From sequence record NC_048673.1: a DNA stretch of 64,000 nt; one strand, 5' to 3'. Of this stretch, positions 40,911-47,619 are shown one piece after another (position 1 is the stretch's first letter; every line of letters starts with the position of its first letter). Under the pieces are notes generated by a model. The model searched no databases. It was given only the letters and a program-made list of their open reading frames with translations, and was not told where the DNA came from. The position numbers were made by a program, and so were the translations under genes.

Positions 40911-41762
40911 TTATTTCTTCATTACCATAGCCCATGTTTCTGGGTTTGGAATATAATCAGAAATCTTATTCACAATCTGTTTATCAAGTTCAGTTGCTTT
41001 CATCGGAGCTTTACCCTGTTGTTTAACTCTTATGTAGTTTGCTTCTTTAACATAAGAACCACCTTTACCAGATTTAACAATAGAAGAGTCAACACCAATT
41101 TTATTGAATGCAATATACCAATCACCATCGGCATAACTCCGGGCACCTTCACCCATAGCCATTAGGTTTTTGAAGGTCATACTTGCACCCTCATGGGTTG
41201 CAACAAGAATTTCAACCGGTACAGTACGGGAACGTTCGGCGTTTTGTTTCATAGCAACGTTGATATCATTCATCACCCACACGATATGAACGTTTTCCTT
41301 GTTATAACCTAGTTCACGAACCTGTTTTGCAATTTGAGCCATCTTACCCATATCTTTAAGGGTAACGTCAAAGATCAAATTAGGTTTACGATCCTCTGGT
41401 GCAGCCAATACACCATTAAAAACACGTTTATCCATGTTCTTGGTTGTCTTGTATACATCAGATAGAAGGCTATGCAGAGTAGAAACGTTTTCTGGCTTCT
41501 TCAAGTCAAACTTGGATATATCGTGCCCGGTTTCTGCTTTAATGCGTCCAGCGAGCTTTGTGGAAGCCATAGCAAGCTCTTTTACACGGTCTACGTCTAG
41601 GGTAATACCTTCCAGACCAACTAGTTTAGAAGTAACAAATCCCTTTCCTGAACCGGCCCCACCAGCCAAGATCAAGACGTTGTTAAACTTAGGATATGCC
41701 TTCTTTCCGAATACCATCAATTTTTCTTCCAATTGAACGAATTCACTAAATTTCATTTTCAT
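40911..41762 (-). CDS. P-loop kinase (zeta-toxin/AAA_33-like), possible internal head protein
   Basis: LILAGGAGSGKGFV, LDVD, NLIFDVT; N-terminus FSEFVQLEE; CTAAATA at 41793-41799. Confidence 0.7.
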   Translation of the reverse strand: MKMKFSEFVQLEEKLMVFGKKAYPKFNNVLILAGGAGSGKGFVTSKLVGLEGITLDVDRVKELAMASTKLAGRIKAETGHDISKFDLKKPENVSTLHSLLSDVYKTTKNMDKRVFNGVLAAPEDRKPNLIFDVTLKDMGKMAQIAKQVRELGYNKENVHIVWVMNDINVAMKQNAERSRTVPVEILVATHEGASMTFKNLMAMGEGARSYADGDWYIAFNKIGVDSSIVKSGKGGSYVKEANYIRVKQQGKAPMKATELDKQIVNKISDYIPNPETWAMVMKK

Positions 41763-43078: not shown

Positions 43079-43560
43079 ATCTGTTTTACCTTCTTATTAG
43101 TTTATTTTAATAAGCCATCGCGAACATACGACGCTGTTTTGCTCGAAGGTCTTCACCTTCTTTCTCTTTCAACAGTTCATCCGGCTTTGCATCCAGACTA
43201 ACCTGTTTGGCTTCTACGTTTTCCCACAGTTTGGAGTTATACCATTTTTCATTACCACCATTGGCACCACCACGACCCTCACGGGCATGACTTTTCTCAT
43301 GAATATTCTTAGCCATTTAAAACTCTCCTATAGTTGATATGAACATATTTAGGGATTAAAGACTACGAATAATCGACATAGCAATCAAAACGGGCCAAAT
43401 TGCTGATACAGAAAGATAATCCATAACTTCTTTAAAAGTAGGGGTCCTATCCTCTTCTCGGTCTTGATGATCGGTAATCCCAAATGCGGTAATGAATACC
43501 AGAACACCAATCAAATACACAATAAAAATTCCAGTCAACATATCAAATTCTCCGTTAATA

Positions 43561-43800
43561 AAAAGAAAAACGGGGACTATATCAAGCCAGTCAAAGCAAG
43601 ATAAAGTCCCCGTTGCCGAACGTTGTCTTTGGTGTCAGACAACAACCTTGTGATAGTGGTAGGTCACACCACCCTCTTTAAAACGGGGACCATAATCGAG
43701 GCAATATGGTCTCTTTTCGTCTAGTGACAATACAGGGTATCACCTTTACCCTTGACTCGTATTGTTTGACGCCGCTGCGCCACTCTTGGGGCGCGTACAC
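43561..43800 (-). ncRNA. Structured non-coding element with terminator/anti-terminator potential
   Basis: No credible ORF; GC-rich; at least five hairpins ending in GGGGAC/GUCCCC plus U-tract. Confidence 0.6.
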
Positions 43801-44344
43801 TTTAAAATCTTAACTATATTGATAACCGGCGTTAGCCTTTTTCATTTCGTAATCATCATCAACAAAAACATCGTGATTACCGTGCATGATATCATGTTTC
43901 AATTTACGATCTCGCTGACGACTCAATGTATTATAACGATCTTTGACACCCGATTCTGGATAACTAGGATATTTATCTCCCAGATCCCGATTCACTTTAA
44001 GTTCATCACCATACCAACTGTCCAGATGTTTTTCATTTTTACGACGAAATGTCTTACCCATATATCATTCCTTACAGGCTTTCTATGTATTTAATCACTC
44101 GGTTTAGTATTTCATCTGAATCATTTATCTCAATATCATCAAATGCATACTTTATCTTTTTTATTACAGTTTCTTTCTTCCATCCGATCTCGAAAGCATC
44201 ATTAACGAAAGAAACCCAATCAATAATATAACCGGAATTATAAAATTTCTCTATCAGAATATCCAACGGAATACCATTTGTTTCAAACTGATAAAATATA
44301 TTACATAAAACCGGAATACCACTATTGGTATAACCATTTACAAA

Positions 44345-44885
44345 AACACTATTTTTACCTTTACGTCCTAACGGCTTGCGTTTAGCGGTGACATATACAA
44401 CCTCTCTTTTTAAGTTTTAGCTTCATGTGCGGCTGCAAAGCAGGTCGAACCACCAAGGCACATACTTGTTGATGTGGTTCCGTAAATCGATCCGGTCGCA
44501 CCATCACCGGACTTAATAGCATTGGCTATCCGAGCCCAACATACAAACATCATCACCCCAATGGACTACGCCTGCAAAACGGTCTTGCTCGTTACTTTTA
44601 CGCTTAGGCCCTTATGGGAATCTAAGCCTTATATTTAACGTCATAACGGACGAGCTTATGTGATGGCTTGAATCAGTGGTCATTCACAAGCAATACTCCC
44701 TATGTAACCTTTTACCCGTCACGGACTAGAACCTTATTACAGGGAAGGAACCTACATCACCATTTGAGTAATGGGAGAGGTCGGGGTTCGGTTTTTATTT
44801 TCTAGCTTTCACTAGATTTTTTACAAATACCGGTGGGCTACTTAAAGCGTCGATTCTCATAGACCGGACTATTGACGAGAATCCA
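44345..44885 (-). ncRNA. GOLLD-like large structured RNA
   Basis: About 540 nt, ORF-free, directly 3' of tRNA-Thr; blocks GAACCCCGACCUCUCCC, GUGACGGGUAAAAGGUUACA, CGUAAAAGUAACGAGCAAGACC and GCGUAGUCCA match GOLLD as recalled; many helices. Boundaries approximate. Confidence 0.7.
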
Positions 44886-44890
44886 AAATT

Positions 44891-44966
44891 TGGTGCCGAA
44901 TGTCCGACTCGAACGGACCACCCCAGCGTTACAAAGGCTGTGCTCTACCAGATGAGCTAATTCGGC
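44891..44966 (-). tRNA. tRNA-Thr(UGU)
   Basis: Cloverleaf; loop TTTGTAA; encoded CCA. Confidence 0.95.
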
Positions 44967-45244
44967 AGCGGATTATAATCAGGATCGTTAGACTGTGATT
45001 ATATCCTAATGTAGTTGACATGCTATCACAAGGAGGAAGGACGTTCAACTGATTTTGTCCATCTGTTCGTTGTTTGGTAAAGGACAGTTACCTCAAGTTC
45101 AACCCTGCTTGTCAAGGAGTAGTTACCATATCGTCTTTATACTACCAATCCCGCCTGAAACCTAAAGGCACGTTTCAGGATATCCAGATTCTCTATGGCT
45201 GGCTTATTCCGGGGCATACGTCGTTACCCGTTCTTTGTGCTAAG

Positions 45245-45320
45245 TGGTCGGTGATACAGGACTCGAACCTGTGACCCTCTGGTCCCAAACCAGACGCGCT
45301 ACCAACTGCGCTAATCACCG
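45245..45320 (-). tRNA. tRNA-Pro(UGG)
   Basis: Loop TTTGGGA; encoded CCA. Confidence 0.95.
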
Positions 45321-45474
45321 AAAAGTTCCAAACCAACTGTATTTTACATACCAGATGACCACATCCCTATAATGGTTGATTTGGATTACCCCGTGCTTAT
45401 CCGTAACGGTTTAAAACCGCAAGGGGGCATCGTCTCCGAGGATTTTATCAGAACGTCTTCTAACTTCTTCTATT

Positions 45475-45565
45475 TGGTGGATGCTGTTGGATTCGAACCA
45501 ACTTGTTTACCCAGAGGGAACGGATTTACAGTCCGCCGCTACACCGCCATCGTAGCCGAACATCC
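45475..45565 (-). tRNA. tRNA-Tyr(GUA)
   Basis: Loop CTGTAAA; long variable arm; CCA. Confidence 0.95.
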
Positions 45566-45571
45566 AGAATT

Positions 45572-45647
45572 TGGCTGGCGAGGTGGGATTCGAACCCACG
45601 ACATACGGATTAACAGTCCGCTGTTCTACCTACTGAACTACACGCCA
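45572..45647 (-). tRNA. tRNA-Asn(GUU)
   Basis: Loop CTGTTAA; CCA. Confidence 0.95.
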
Positions 45648-45648
45648 T

Positions 45649-45726
45649 TGGAAGCGGGAGGTGGATTTGAACCACCGATTTCCAGATAATGAGTCTGGCG
45701 AGAACTCCTGACTTCTCCACCCCGCT
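45649..45726 (-). tRNA. tRNA-Met(CAU) with atypical U37
   Basis: Loop CTCATTA; acceptor AGCGGGG; CCA. Confidence 0.85.
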
Positions 45727-46107
45727 ATGATATTTAGGGTGGTCTTTCACCCTTCATGAATCTTGGTCATTATAACCCGGCTACATACGCGCATCAACAT
45801 CCCTTTTGATATTTTTAGAAGCGATGGGACTCTGTATCGCTTCATTATTATCGTAAGGTCAACGACCATTAAATTCGTGAGAGCTTACAACTATAGAATA
45901 TATGCATTAACTATGGATTTTTCGATCTGTCTTACTGATGTAAGTTTACTCTTACCTTTAAACTTAAAGGCAGGTTCTCCATTTGGAGCAAACCCAAAGA
46001 CTACTAAACTATGGCGTCCATTCTTCCAATGGATTATACCATCACCAACTGACCAATTTTCAATTATGGATTTTATACCAGACATAATATAGCTCTCATC
46101 AAAAATT

Positions 46108-46184
46108 TGGTGGCCCCTACTGGACTCGAACCAGTGACCAACCGATTATGAGTCGGTTGCTCTAACCAACTGAGCTAAGGGGCC
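46108..46184 (-). tRNA. tRNA-Ile2(CAU, lysidine type)
   Basis: GGCCCCTTAGCTCAG...CTCATAA...GGGGCCACCA closely matches the enterobacterial ileX pattern. Confidence 0.9.
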
Positions 46185-46268
46185 AAATGATATGTTCTTT
46201 AGTCGAGCCGACTTATCCGTATTCTTTCAACGGTGAGCTGATAGCTGTAACACATCAATTTTAAATCT

Positions 46269-46344
46269 TGGAGCGGGTAGCCGGTAACGATCCGGTCTAC
46301 TCAAACTTGGAAGGCTTGCATGTATCCATAAACACCTTACCCGC
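46269..46344 (-). tRNA. tRNA-Gly(UCC) with atypical T-loop
   Basis: Loop CTTCCAA; T-loop ATCGTTA; CCA. Confidence 0.85.
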
Positions 46345-46345
46345 T

Positions 46346-46429
46346 TGGTCGGGATGGACGGACTCGAACCGTCACGCCTATGGCGCTAGAACCTAAATCT
46401 AGTGTGTCTGCCAATTTCACCACATCCCG
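46346..46429 (-). tRNA. tRNA-Leu(UAG)
   Basis: Loop TTTAGGT; variable arm; CCA. Confidence 0.95.
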
Positions 46430-46506
46430 TGGTGCGCCGTACTGGATTCGAACCAGTGACCCACGCTTTAGAAGAACGTTGCTCTATCCAACTGAGCTAA
46501 CAGCGC
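46430..46506 (-). tRNA. tRNA-Arg(UCU)
   Basis: Loop CTTCTAA; CCA. Confidence 0.95.
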
Positions 46507-46507
46507 A

Positions 46508-46557
46508 ATTTATATAAACATCATATCATAGTTAGAAAGGATGTTTAACTTTTATTT
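46508..46557 (-). promoter_or_regulatory. tRNA-block promoter, 50-nt repeat copy 1
   Basis: TTAAAC-17-TATGAT followed by TATAAAT; 49/50 identical to 47622..47671. Confidence 0.8.
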
Positions 46558-47526
46558 GAAGTATTTTTCGAAGTAAGCGACTGGATGTCTGGCTTCTTCA
46601 TCATACTCGTATTTAGGGGTGTCAGAAAACAATACCCTATAAGCAGTTTTCATCCCCGAACCATATGGTATCTCAATTTCATCGTTAAAGTCAAATGCTA
46701 TATAACCTTTTTTACGGAGAGACCGACAACTAACACTCAACCAAGGTCCACAACAGGATCTAAGTCTACCAATTGCATAGATATCCTTACCATCATTGTT
46801 AATATAGCAATAAATTTTGTCTACATCAACACCATGGATATTTTTCCATTCTTCGCTGGTTTGTTTGAAGACCAAACTTGATTGAATCTCAGTAAGATCT
46901 TTCATGCTAAACCACCATATATTTCCACATCCCAAGAAATGATTTCTGTAACTTTGTAATTAGCACAGTCACCATTAGCCAAACCACGGATACAGAAAGA
47001 AGGAAGACACCCATGAACATCATACACTTTGTCATTGGTTATTTCTACGTCACCCGTAACAATAATGATATTACCTTTCTTGTAAGTTTCTACGGAATTC
47101 AGAATACCAACCGGATCGGGGGTATCTTTAGCATTATCGACGTTAAAACATTTTTGACCAAAATTGATTAGAACTGGTAGCTTTTCAGAGAATTCATCTA
47201 CAACTTGTTCACTCAAAATGAATTTTTGACCATTAGTATTGACCAATAAACCTTTTTCATTAAGGTTATAGGCACCAAGCTTCACTTTCATTTTAATATC
47301 TCGATTTTTGATAGAAAGGCTTCAAATGTTTACCACGCATAATCTTAACGCATTTACCTTTACAGTGATCTTCATTGAAGATACTACTCCAAAGGACATC
47401 GCGCATGTAATTTCTGATGTATACGTTCATATTAAGCATCTCATATTGAATTTTGGAGATGATAAACTCATTTTACGTTCAAAAGCTCATTCAACAAAAA
47501 GGAATTTGGGTTTATCATCTCGTATT

Positions 47527-47619
47527 TGGTGCGTGAGGTGGGAATCGAACCCACGATGTGCCATTATGCAGTATCGGATTTTAAGTCCGATGCGTTTCAA
47601 CCAACTTCGCCACTCACGC
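47527..47619 (-). tRNA. tRNA-Leu(UAA)
   Basis: Loop CTTAAAA; long variable arm; CCA. Confidence 0.95.

Follow-up and report, generated by a model that had tools for sequence, protein, structure and literature searches.

A predicted ~240-nt folded non-coding RNA ending in a terminator hairpin near the tRNA region of Emmerichvirinae Aeromonas phages

Locus, neighbouring genes and distribution

The window analysed here, by which we mean the whole 64,000-nt stretch of record NC_048673.1, belongs to the genome of an AS-zj-like Aeromonas phage (Straboviridae, Emmerichvirinae, Ceceduovirus), AS-zj itself being a 230-kb T4-like phage. On its minus strand a block of tRNA genes is followed by a non-coding stretch, two small ORFs, a gap of some interest to this study and further small ORFs leading to hoc (Table 1), and the order tRNAs, 83-aa ORF, RNA, small ORFs, hoc is constant across lineages. 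The 801 nt around the element that fills this gap match AS-zj and a dozen or so near-identical isolates at 100% identity, CC2 at 96% and phage 65 at ~75%.

Table 1. Features of the locus and of the predicted RNA, in window coordinates
Feature	Coordinates	Strand	Remarks
10-tRNA cluster	47619-44891	minus	ARAGORN/Rfam; upstream of the element
Non-coding stretch	between the tRNA cluster (ends 44891) and the two small ORFs	minus	
Two small ORFs between tRNA region and element	44266-44072, 44061-43810	minus	
83-aa basic ORF (phrog_1774)	43810..44061	minus	upstream; stop codon 15 nt before P1
Gap holding the element	43809-43542	minus	unannotated in every record inspected
Whole conserved RNA, ~240 nt	43561..43800	minus	5' GUGUA leader, P1-P9, U-tract; putative ends
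P1 hairpin	43794-43790 / 43781-43777	minus	GCGCC/GGCGC, flush against P2
5' domain	43682..43776	minus	three-way junction closed by P2
P2	43776-43772 / 43686-43682	minus	AGCGG/CCGUU
P3	43771-43768 / 43721-43718	minus	CGUC/GACG
P4-P5 arm	43764-43728	minus	nested ACAAUAC..GGGUA/UACCC..GUAUUGU; loop AAGGUGA 43746-43740
P6	43711-43688	minus	GACCAUA/UAUGGUC
Second GUCCCCGUU	43682..43690	minus	proposed anti-terminator strand; end of P6 3' arm plus P2 3' strand
3' domain	43622..43676	minus	GAGG, P7, AGGUU, P8
P7	43672-43656	minus	GUGGU/ACCAC, loop GUGACCU
P8	43643-43622	minus	GUUGUC/GACAAC, loop GACACCAA
P9 terminator hairpin and U-tract	43561..43614	minus	5' arm 43614-43605, 3' arm 43578-43569
P9 apical loop; U-tract	43594-43589; 43570-43561	minus	loop UUGACU
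PK1	43701-43698 / 43676-43673	minus	P6-loop CCUC with GAGG; CCCC/GGGG in Aswh_1
PK2	43757-43752 / 43594-43589	minus	J4/5 internal loop AGUCAA with P9 apical loop UUGACU
PK3	43665-43661 / 43648-43644	minus	P7-loop GACCU with AGGUU; GACCC/GGGUU in Aswh_1
61-aa small membrane-protein ORF	43356..43541	minus	downstream; starts 27 nt past the terminator stem
Small ORFs past the element	43541-43356, 43316-43107, others	minus	running towards hoc

The genes on either side of the element differ in how faithfully they accompany it. The upstream 83-aa ORF always adjoins the RNA, yet its product is only 31% identical in amino acids to the Aswh_1 homologue, and the RNA was not found after the homologues of this protein in three unrelated phages. 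Downstream, the 61-aa ORF, whose product is 34% identical to phage 65 p137, directly follows the RNA in four genomes and is missing, with no remnant, in Aswh_1/ZPAH1; the extra 145 nt that Aswh_1 carries, examined as a potential leftover of this ORF, gave no tblastn signal. In a 44RR-like Aeromonas phage, a relative of this two-helix membrane protein (~33% identity to the phage 65 homologue) is encoded among the clustered tRNA genes, flanked by tRNA-Thr and tRNA-Trp (L162:330-482). A small membrane protein seems to accompany T4-type tRNA islands. The nearest tRNA gene ends about 1 kb from the element, with two ORFs between. In the 44RR-like Aeromonas phages, reached through synteny of the downstream 69-aa protein, the RNA is absent and the 69-aa gene directly follows the last tRNA, which places the RNA at the distal edge of the tRNA/stable-RNA region.

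A sensitive blastn search with the 256-nt element alone recovered it in 21 phage records from three lineages, namely Ceceduovirus (the AS-zj group and CC2), phage 65 with 65.2 and avDM6, and Aswh_1 with ZPAH1, which together hold only four distinct element sequences. None of the 21 GenBank records annotates it, and the literature on these phages makes no mention of an RNA at the locus. Since the same 21 records alone carry the downstream 69-aa gene, every sequenced genome with the locus has the RNA. Wider pattern searches returned little else: of the 113 loci found by scanning viral contigs with 14-mers, all but phage 65 itself are attributable to chance; two-block patterns run over viral contigs, metagenomes and bacterial genomes and filtered with the covariance model gave only AS-zj, CC2, phage 65 and one 65-like metagenome contig; and an independent three-block pattern scan gave nothing new. 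Judged from these searches, the RNA is restricted to Aeromonas phages of the Emmerichvirinae, which comprise two genera plus unclassified members. Public sequencing runs with the element consist of low-depth assembler contigs that carry no strand or end information.

Near the element, sigma-70-like promoter matches occur at chance level, and no T4-type late promoter TATAAATA was found nearby. As the RNA lacks an evident promoter, it is probably made as part of a transcript that also covers the tRNA region and the small ORFs upstream of it. In the Ishigurovirus relatives, the space separating the 83-aa ORF from the RNA holds a mini-ORF that has a Shine-Dalgarno sequence of its own and ends 7-8 nt before P1 (L002:2944-2976 in phage 65 and L004:2949-2975 in Aswh_1; also in L003 and L127). 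Its 8-10 codons read M-[Y/I/F]-R-E-E-(N-E)-[D/G]-W-F-stop, and, with three Arg codons (AGA, CGC, CGT) and two Glu codons (GAA, GAG) in use, it is conserved as a peptide rather than as nucleotides. AS-zj and CC2 have lost the mini-ORF, the deletion lying between 43809 and 43801 in the window. Where present, its product may act as a leader or arrest peptide and so link translation to the folding of P1.

Several further observations concern the surrounding region. The AS-zj GenBank record has no tRNA features across the 10-tRNA cluster (window 44891-47619). In Aswh_1, the "hypothetical protein" ASwh1_272 (L004:2473-2667) is likely a spurious CDS, because it overlaps two tRNA genes (L004 2463-2547 and 2557-2630) and reads like translated tRNA sequence. 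Phage 65 carries a tRNA with a long variable arm (L002:76-165) that scores 47.7 bits against the Rfam tRNA-Sec threshold of 47 and is more likely a class II tRNA than tRNA-Sec. Between tRNA-Pro and tRNA-Thr lies a spacer (window 44967-45243, minus strand) that shares 88% identity with L002 1323-1600 of phage 65, a stretch partly annotated there as the small CDS 65p135. A 283-aa protein conserved in all lineages (window 40911-41762, minus strand) matches Pfam Zeta_toxin at 31 bits (cut-off 22.3) and matches AAA_33 and AAA_19 below their cut-offs, which makes it a P-loop kinase.

A second non-coding block (window 44416-44887, minus strand) starts right after tRNA-Thr and is 88% identical to Aswh_1 and 88-95% identical to phage 65, which makes it better conserved than the flanking ORFs. 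It contains several conserved hairpins and a few compensatory changes and has no Rfam match, and a 44RR-like phage retains a recognisable version of its 3' hairpin that carries a compensatory change. An extra tRNA directly follows the block in CC2 and Aswh_1, which puts it within the tRNA precursor, the place that rnaC/rnaD occupy in T4. The block probably represents a further stable RNA not described before.

Fold, covariation and long-range pairings

The element shows no sign of coding capacity: all four distinct sequences have 1 to 6 stops in each of the six frames, and indels of 1 and 2 nt separate the lineages. The identity of the RNA core between lineages is 70-73% (71% between the window and phage 65), against amino-acid identities down to 31% in the adjacent 83-aa protein. 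Read on the minus strand, where RNA position i corresponds to window coordinate 43801-i, the 256-nt stretch has a minimum free energy (MFE) of -84.9 kcal/mol (z = -3.95), and none of 200 shuffled sequences was equally stable. An earlier note made from the sequence alone had described a chain of hairpins on this strand; every one of them is found where it was placed, and the MFE fold includes them all. The minus strand is taken as the transcribed one because G.U pairs occur only in the minus-strand sense.

By folding the three lineages independently (MFE), we recovered the same helices in each despite their rewritten stems. The RNAalifold consensus computed on a raw MAFFT alignment was distorted, since stems replaced wholesale are misaligned there, and it was dropped in favour of the folds made lineage by lineage and of an alignment fitted to a covariance model. 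This model, which covers the 162-nt core and leaves P1 and P9 outside, was built from the two closer lineages; the RNA of the third, Aswh_1/ZPAH1, had been held out and was recovered at 114 bits (E about 7e-28), and a single copy is found in the window. In the alignment fitted to this model, 98.8% of cells fall in standard pairs and 19 of the 43 core pairs are changed on both sides, versus 2-3 when the partners are slid by 1-3 columns, and none of 500 shuffles reached values of pairing or covariation as high; these counts are to be read as those of an alignment fitted to the structure and of four distinct sequences.

The changes are distributed unevenly over the fold. Pairs with double changes number 10 in P4, P5 and P6 together, 2 in P7 and 6 in P8, while P2 and P3 are invariant but for one G.U to A-U change and the loops of the 3' domain are near-invariant. 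P1 and P9 have each been swapped for a different hairpin at the same place across lineages; the P1 stem is fully rewritten with the hairpin kept, as GGGGU/ACCCC in phage 65 and GUCCCG/CGGGAC in Aswh_1.

All unpaired segments were searched for complementarity kept in every lineage, which yielded three long-range pairings (PK1-PK3), of which PK1 was also picked by RNAalifold. PK2 changes from AGUCAA/UUGACU in the window, CC2 and phage 65 to AGCCGA/UUGGCU in Aswh_1 with all six pairs kept, and each of the three pairings is maintained in Aswh_1 by a U-A to C-G double change. Across the 30 nt involved, 7 of 7 substitutions preserve pairing, an outcome that chance would produce in 0.02% of cases under random placement and in 2.9% with random bases at the same sites. 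Because all of the changes are transitions and come from a single lineage, this tertiary covariation is only suggestive (p roughly 0.01-0.03), and PK1-PK3 are accordingly presented as candidate long-range pairings. A further contact of the P5-loop GGUG(A) with either the P8-loop CACC or J4/3 UCAC(U) is possible, but both sides are invariant. Taken as a whole, the comparative evidence identifies the element as a real, previously undescribed folded non-coding RNA of ~240 nt.

The terminator hairpin and its alternative pairing

At the 3' end lies the arrangement of an intrinsic terminator that the earlier note had pointed out, a stable G+C-rich-based hairpin with the arms AACGGGGAC (43614-43606) and GUCCCCGUU (43577-43569) followed by the U-tract UUUUUCUUUUU. 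The basal helix of this hairpin, P9, has a probability of 0.97 in the full-length fold; a simple terminator scan missed it because its loop exceeds the 8-nt limit of that scan. An equivalent hairpin with a U-tract is present in all lineages, and in Aswh_1 the P9 stem is replaced, the loop is kept and a second hairpin with a U-tract stands further on. The conservation of the apical loop despite the exchange of the stem, together with its pairing to the core, suggests that the terminated molecule itself is the selected fold. Between the window and phage 65 the identity of P9 is 97.9%, while that of the core is 71%. Seen between AS-zj and phage 65, the 47-nt hairpin (window 43568-43614 versus L002:3165-3211) forms an island of 98% identity, which reflects either a very strong constraint from multiple partners or a short gene-conversion tract.

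An exact second copy of GUCCCCGUU overlaps the P6 3' arm, as had also been seen earlier, and the identity of the repeat runs to 11 nt (GUCCCCGUUUU). Over the 64 kb of the window there are three occurrences of the 9-mer or its complement, each of them in the element, where 0.19 copies are expected and none of 100 shuffles reaches three. This repeat beyond chance is part of the case for a riboswitch-like conditional terminator controlling read-through into 43356..43541 and beyond. Under such a scheme, an unfolded sensor (the junction closed by P2) would leave 43690-43682 free to pair with 43614-43606 and permit read-through, while a folded or liganded core would hold the strand in P2 and let the terminator form, an architecture that fits a classic OFF switch.

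Folding energies lend this scheme physical plausibility in part of the family. The competing helix (43690-43682 with 43614-43606) has an energy of -17.8 kcal/mol in the window, which none of 300 shuffles reaches, and of -13.9 in CC2 and -11.3 kcal/mol in phage 65/avDM6. For the window, CC2 and phage 65, partition functions of the nascent transcript at the stage before the 3' arm emerges give a probability of 0.6-0.99 that the region of the second GUCCCCGUU is paired with the terminator 5' arm, and a probability of about 0 for P2; in the full-length RNA of the same three phages the terminator then wins over the competitor by 9-16 kcal/mol. A switch is thus physically plausible in the genus of the window and in the phage 65 lineage. 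The high conservation of P9 between two lineages whose other stems have diverged points the same way, because a sequence doubly constrained by switching would look so, and it would equally suit a hairpin constrained by PK2 and by a bound partner. In addition, the only lineage without the competitor also has no ORF directly after the terminator and possesses a second terminator-like hairpin.

The comparison of relatives weighs against the switch. In Aswh_1/ZPAH1 the whole terminator stem is replaced and the competitor has no counterpart; nascent folds of Aswh_1 contain no defined competing helix (probability at most 0.38 when the 5' arm is just out), and the core there is still strongly constrained. 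Because that core is maintained without the competitor, the switch is not a conserved property of the family, and the conservation of the alternative pairing among relatives, whose absence the earlier note had named as a refutation, breaks down in one of the three lineages. Within Ceceduovirus, the C92U/G111A double change of CC2, found again in a CC2-like wastewater variant, leaves P6 intact and makes the competitor less stable (-13.9 kcal/mol instead of -17.8). The phage 65 competitor is an 8-bp version that has lost its outer pairs without compensation and whose energy is matched by 18% of shuffles. The two supporting lineages moreover amount to one evolutionary observation, since they share one terminator sequence.

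The layout of the element is also atypical for an expression platform, in that 67 nt with two hairpins, conserved loops and a pseudoknot separate the two strands, and the terminator loop is conserved and paired with the core. The mutually exclusive pairings expected of an attenuator are neither conserved nor co-varying across the relatives, and the element does not hold a constant position before the same regulated gene. The downstream genes, which encode small proteins of unassigned function, suggest no ligand, and no riboswitch or T-box family matches. A T-box reading, prompted by a GGGUGGU..ACC resemblance, was rejected, as UGG is UAG in phage 65 and RF00230 has no match. Of the switch proposed in the earlier note, the competing helix therefore stands as plausible in the nascent folds of the window, CC2 and phage 65 and is absent in Aswh_1/ZPAH1; likewise, the proposed read-through into 43356..43541 agrees with the four genomes in which the ORF follows the terminator and finds no target in Aswh_1/ZPAH1, where the ORF is absent. 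Overall, we regard a conditional terminator as possible but doubtful.

Candidate roles and comparison with known RNAs

The other alternative in the earlier note, a stable non-coding RNA of no known class, is the better fit, given the strong covariation, the integration of the terminator into the fold and the result of the Rfam comparison, in which no family covers the element. Our preferred reading, to which we assign about an even chance, is a stand-alone ornate non-coding RNA of ~235-240 nt with an integral terminator, most likely acting in trans as a binding scaffold. Such an RNA would end at its own intrinsic terminator and would fold into nine helices, with P1 leading into the three-way junction of P2, P3-P5 and P6, followed by P7, P8 and P9, the terminator hairpin. 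The helices would be linked by as many as three long-range pairings, in which the P6 loop meets J2/7, the P7 loop meets J7/8 and J4/5 meets the P9 apical loop. Docking of the terminator hairpin into the core would make the terminated RNA itself the functional, selected molecule. As a compact scaffold, it would use its near-invariant loops and junctions to bind a protein, a small molecule or its own copies. As an add-on restricted to some lineages, the P2 3' strand may capture the nascent 5' arm of the terminator and so tune read-through into the membrane-protein gene.

A purely cis-acting role, in which the element would be a 3' UTR module that ends the tRNA/small-ORF unit, protects it from exonucleases and insulates it, with no function as a free RNA, was considered as well. 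The element does end a co-directional block of tRNAs and small ORFs directly after a stop codon, its terminator is strong, and Aswh_1 adds a second hairpin with a U-tract further on. A stabiliser, however, needs just a hairpin, and nine helices, near-invariant loops and three co-varying pairings exceed that role; the RNA is also much better conserved than the ORF that it would protect. We consider this explanation very unlikely.

Two readings are more speculative, and either of them being correct seems distinctly unlikely to us. The RNA might be a miniature counterpart of ROOL and GOLLD that self-assembles into an RNA-only oligomer, in which case the contact of J4/5 with the terminator loop, and possibly the GGUG-CACC contact of the P5 and P8 loops, would be partly intermolecular. 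Alternatively, it might represent a new class of sensor, whose efficiency of termination would be set by the terminator loop docking onto the core when a ligand is bound there. Either reading, if true, would make the element a tractable ~240-nt model for phage non-coding RNAs associated with tRNA islands.

Structured RNAs beside phage tRNA islands are a long-standing puzzle. T4 rnaC and rnaD have been known for about 50 years, ROOL and GOLLD more recently, and to our knowledge none of them has an assigned function. The element adds to this puzzle a small, well-delimited and heavily pseudoknotted family. Since the Aeromonas phages are lytic and cultivable with their host, deletion, structure probing, partner pull-down and termination assays would be straightforward. 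The locus also provides a cautionary case, in which a textbook-looking terminator/anti-terminator of one genome is no conserved feature once relatives are compared.

Membership of a known stable RNA family, as a divergent relative of T4 rnaC/rnaD, ROOL/GOLLD, a tRNA-like RNA, tmRNA or RNase P RNA, is suggested by the position near a phage tRNA island, which resembles that of T4 rnaC/rnaD and of ROOL/GOLLD. Against it stand the searches of Rfam 15, whose families include riboswitches, T-box, ribozymes, tmRNA, RNase P, 6S, SRP, Y-RNA-like, ROOL, GOLLD and others. At gathering thresholds the whole window gave tRNAs only; at E<=10, the region 43300-44900 gave only chance snoRNA-type matches away from the element; and at E<=1, the phage 65 and Aswh_1 relatives (L002 and L004) gave nothing over the RNA. 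ARAGORN finds no tRNA or tmRNA at the element, and a T-arm motif and a CCA end are absent. Homology to T4 rnaC/rnaD was rejected separately, there being no meaningful alignment, no covariance-model match at the T4 tRNA-rnaD-rnaC locus and no local blastn match. On this evidence, we hold a known-family identity to be extremely improbable.

Comparison with known systems places these results in context. OFF riboswitches with a junction aptamer (purine, TPP) resemble the element in that the 3' strand of the closing helix can pair with the terminator 5' arm before an ORF. They differ from it in that here the alternative pairing is not family-wide, the two strands lie on either side of a large conserved domain, the terminator has a conserved loop that pairs with the core, the downstream gene is variable and no model matches. 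Leader-peptide attenuators find a parallel in the conserved Shine-Dalgarno-preceded mini-ORF just before P1 in the Ishigurovirus relatives; unlike theirs, this mini-ORF has no run of regulatory codons, is deleted in the genus of the window and is dispensable for conservation of the RNA.

T4 rnaC and rnaD (the species 1 and species 2 stable RNAs), described as "RNAs of yet unknown functions" (PMC9697503), are likewise structured, lie at the distal end of the tRNA region and run in the same direction as the tRNAs. They directly abut tRNA-Arg, and the 3' end of rnaC is a tRNA-like T-arm, whereas the element neither abuts tRNA genes nor carries a tRNA-like 3' module, being about 1 kb from the last tRNA with two ORFs between, ending in an intrinsic terminator and being pseudoknotted. 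ROOL and GOLLD are phage and prophage RNAs "often near tRNA islands", with multiple pseudoknots and conserved loops, that form RNA-only cages via kissing loops, their covarying contacts being partly intermolecular (bioRxiv 10.1101/2024.12.08.627333). With these the element shares a phage origin, proximity to a tRNA island, a pseudoknotted multi-helix fold and loop-loop covariation, while at ~240 nt against ~580 nt and >800 nt it is 2.5-4 times smaller and unrelated in sequence. In kind, rather than by homology, the element thus sits with the ornate phage RNAs, having 10 tRNAs upstream, nine helices, three co-varying long-range pairings and no coding capacity.
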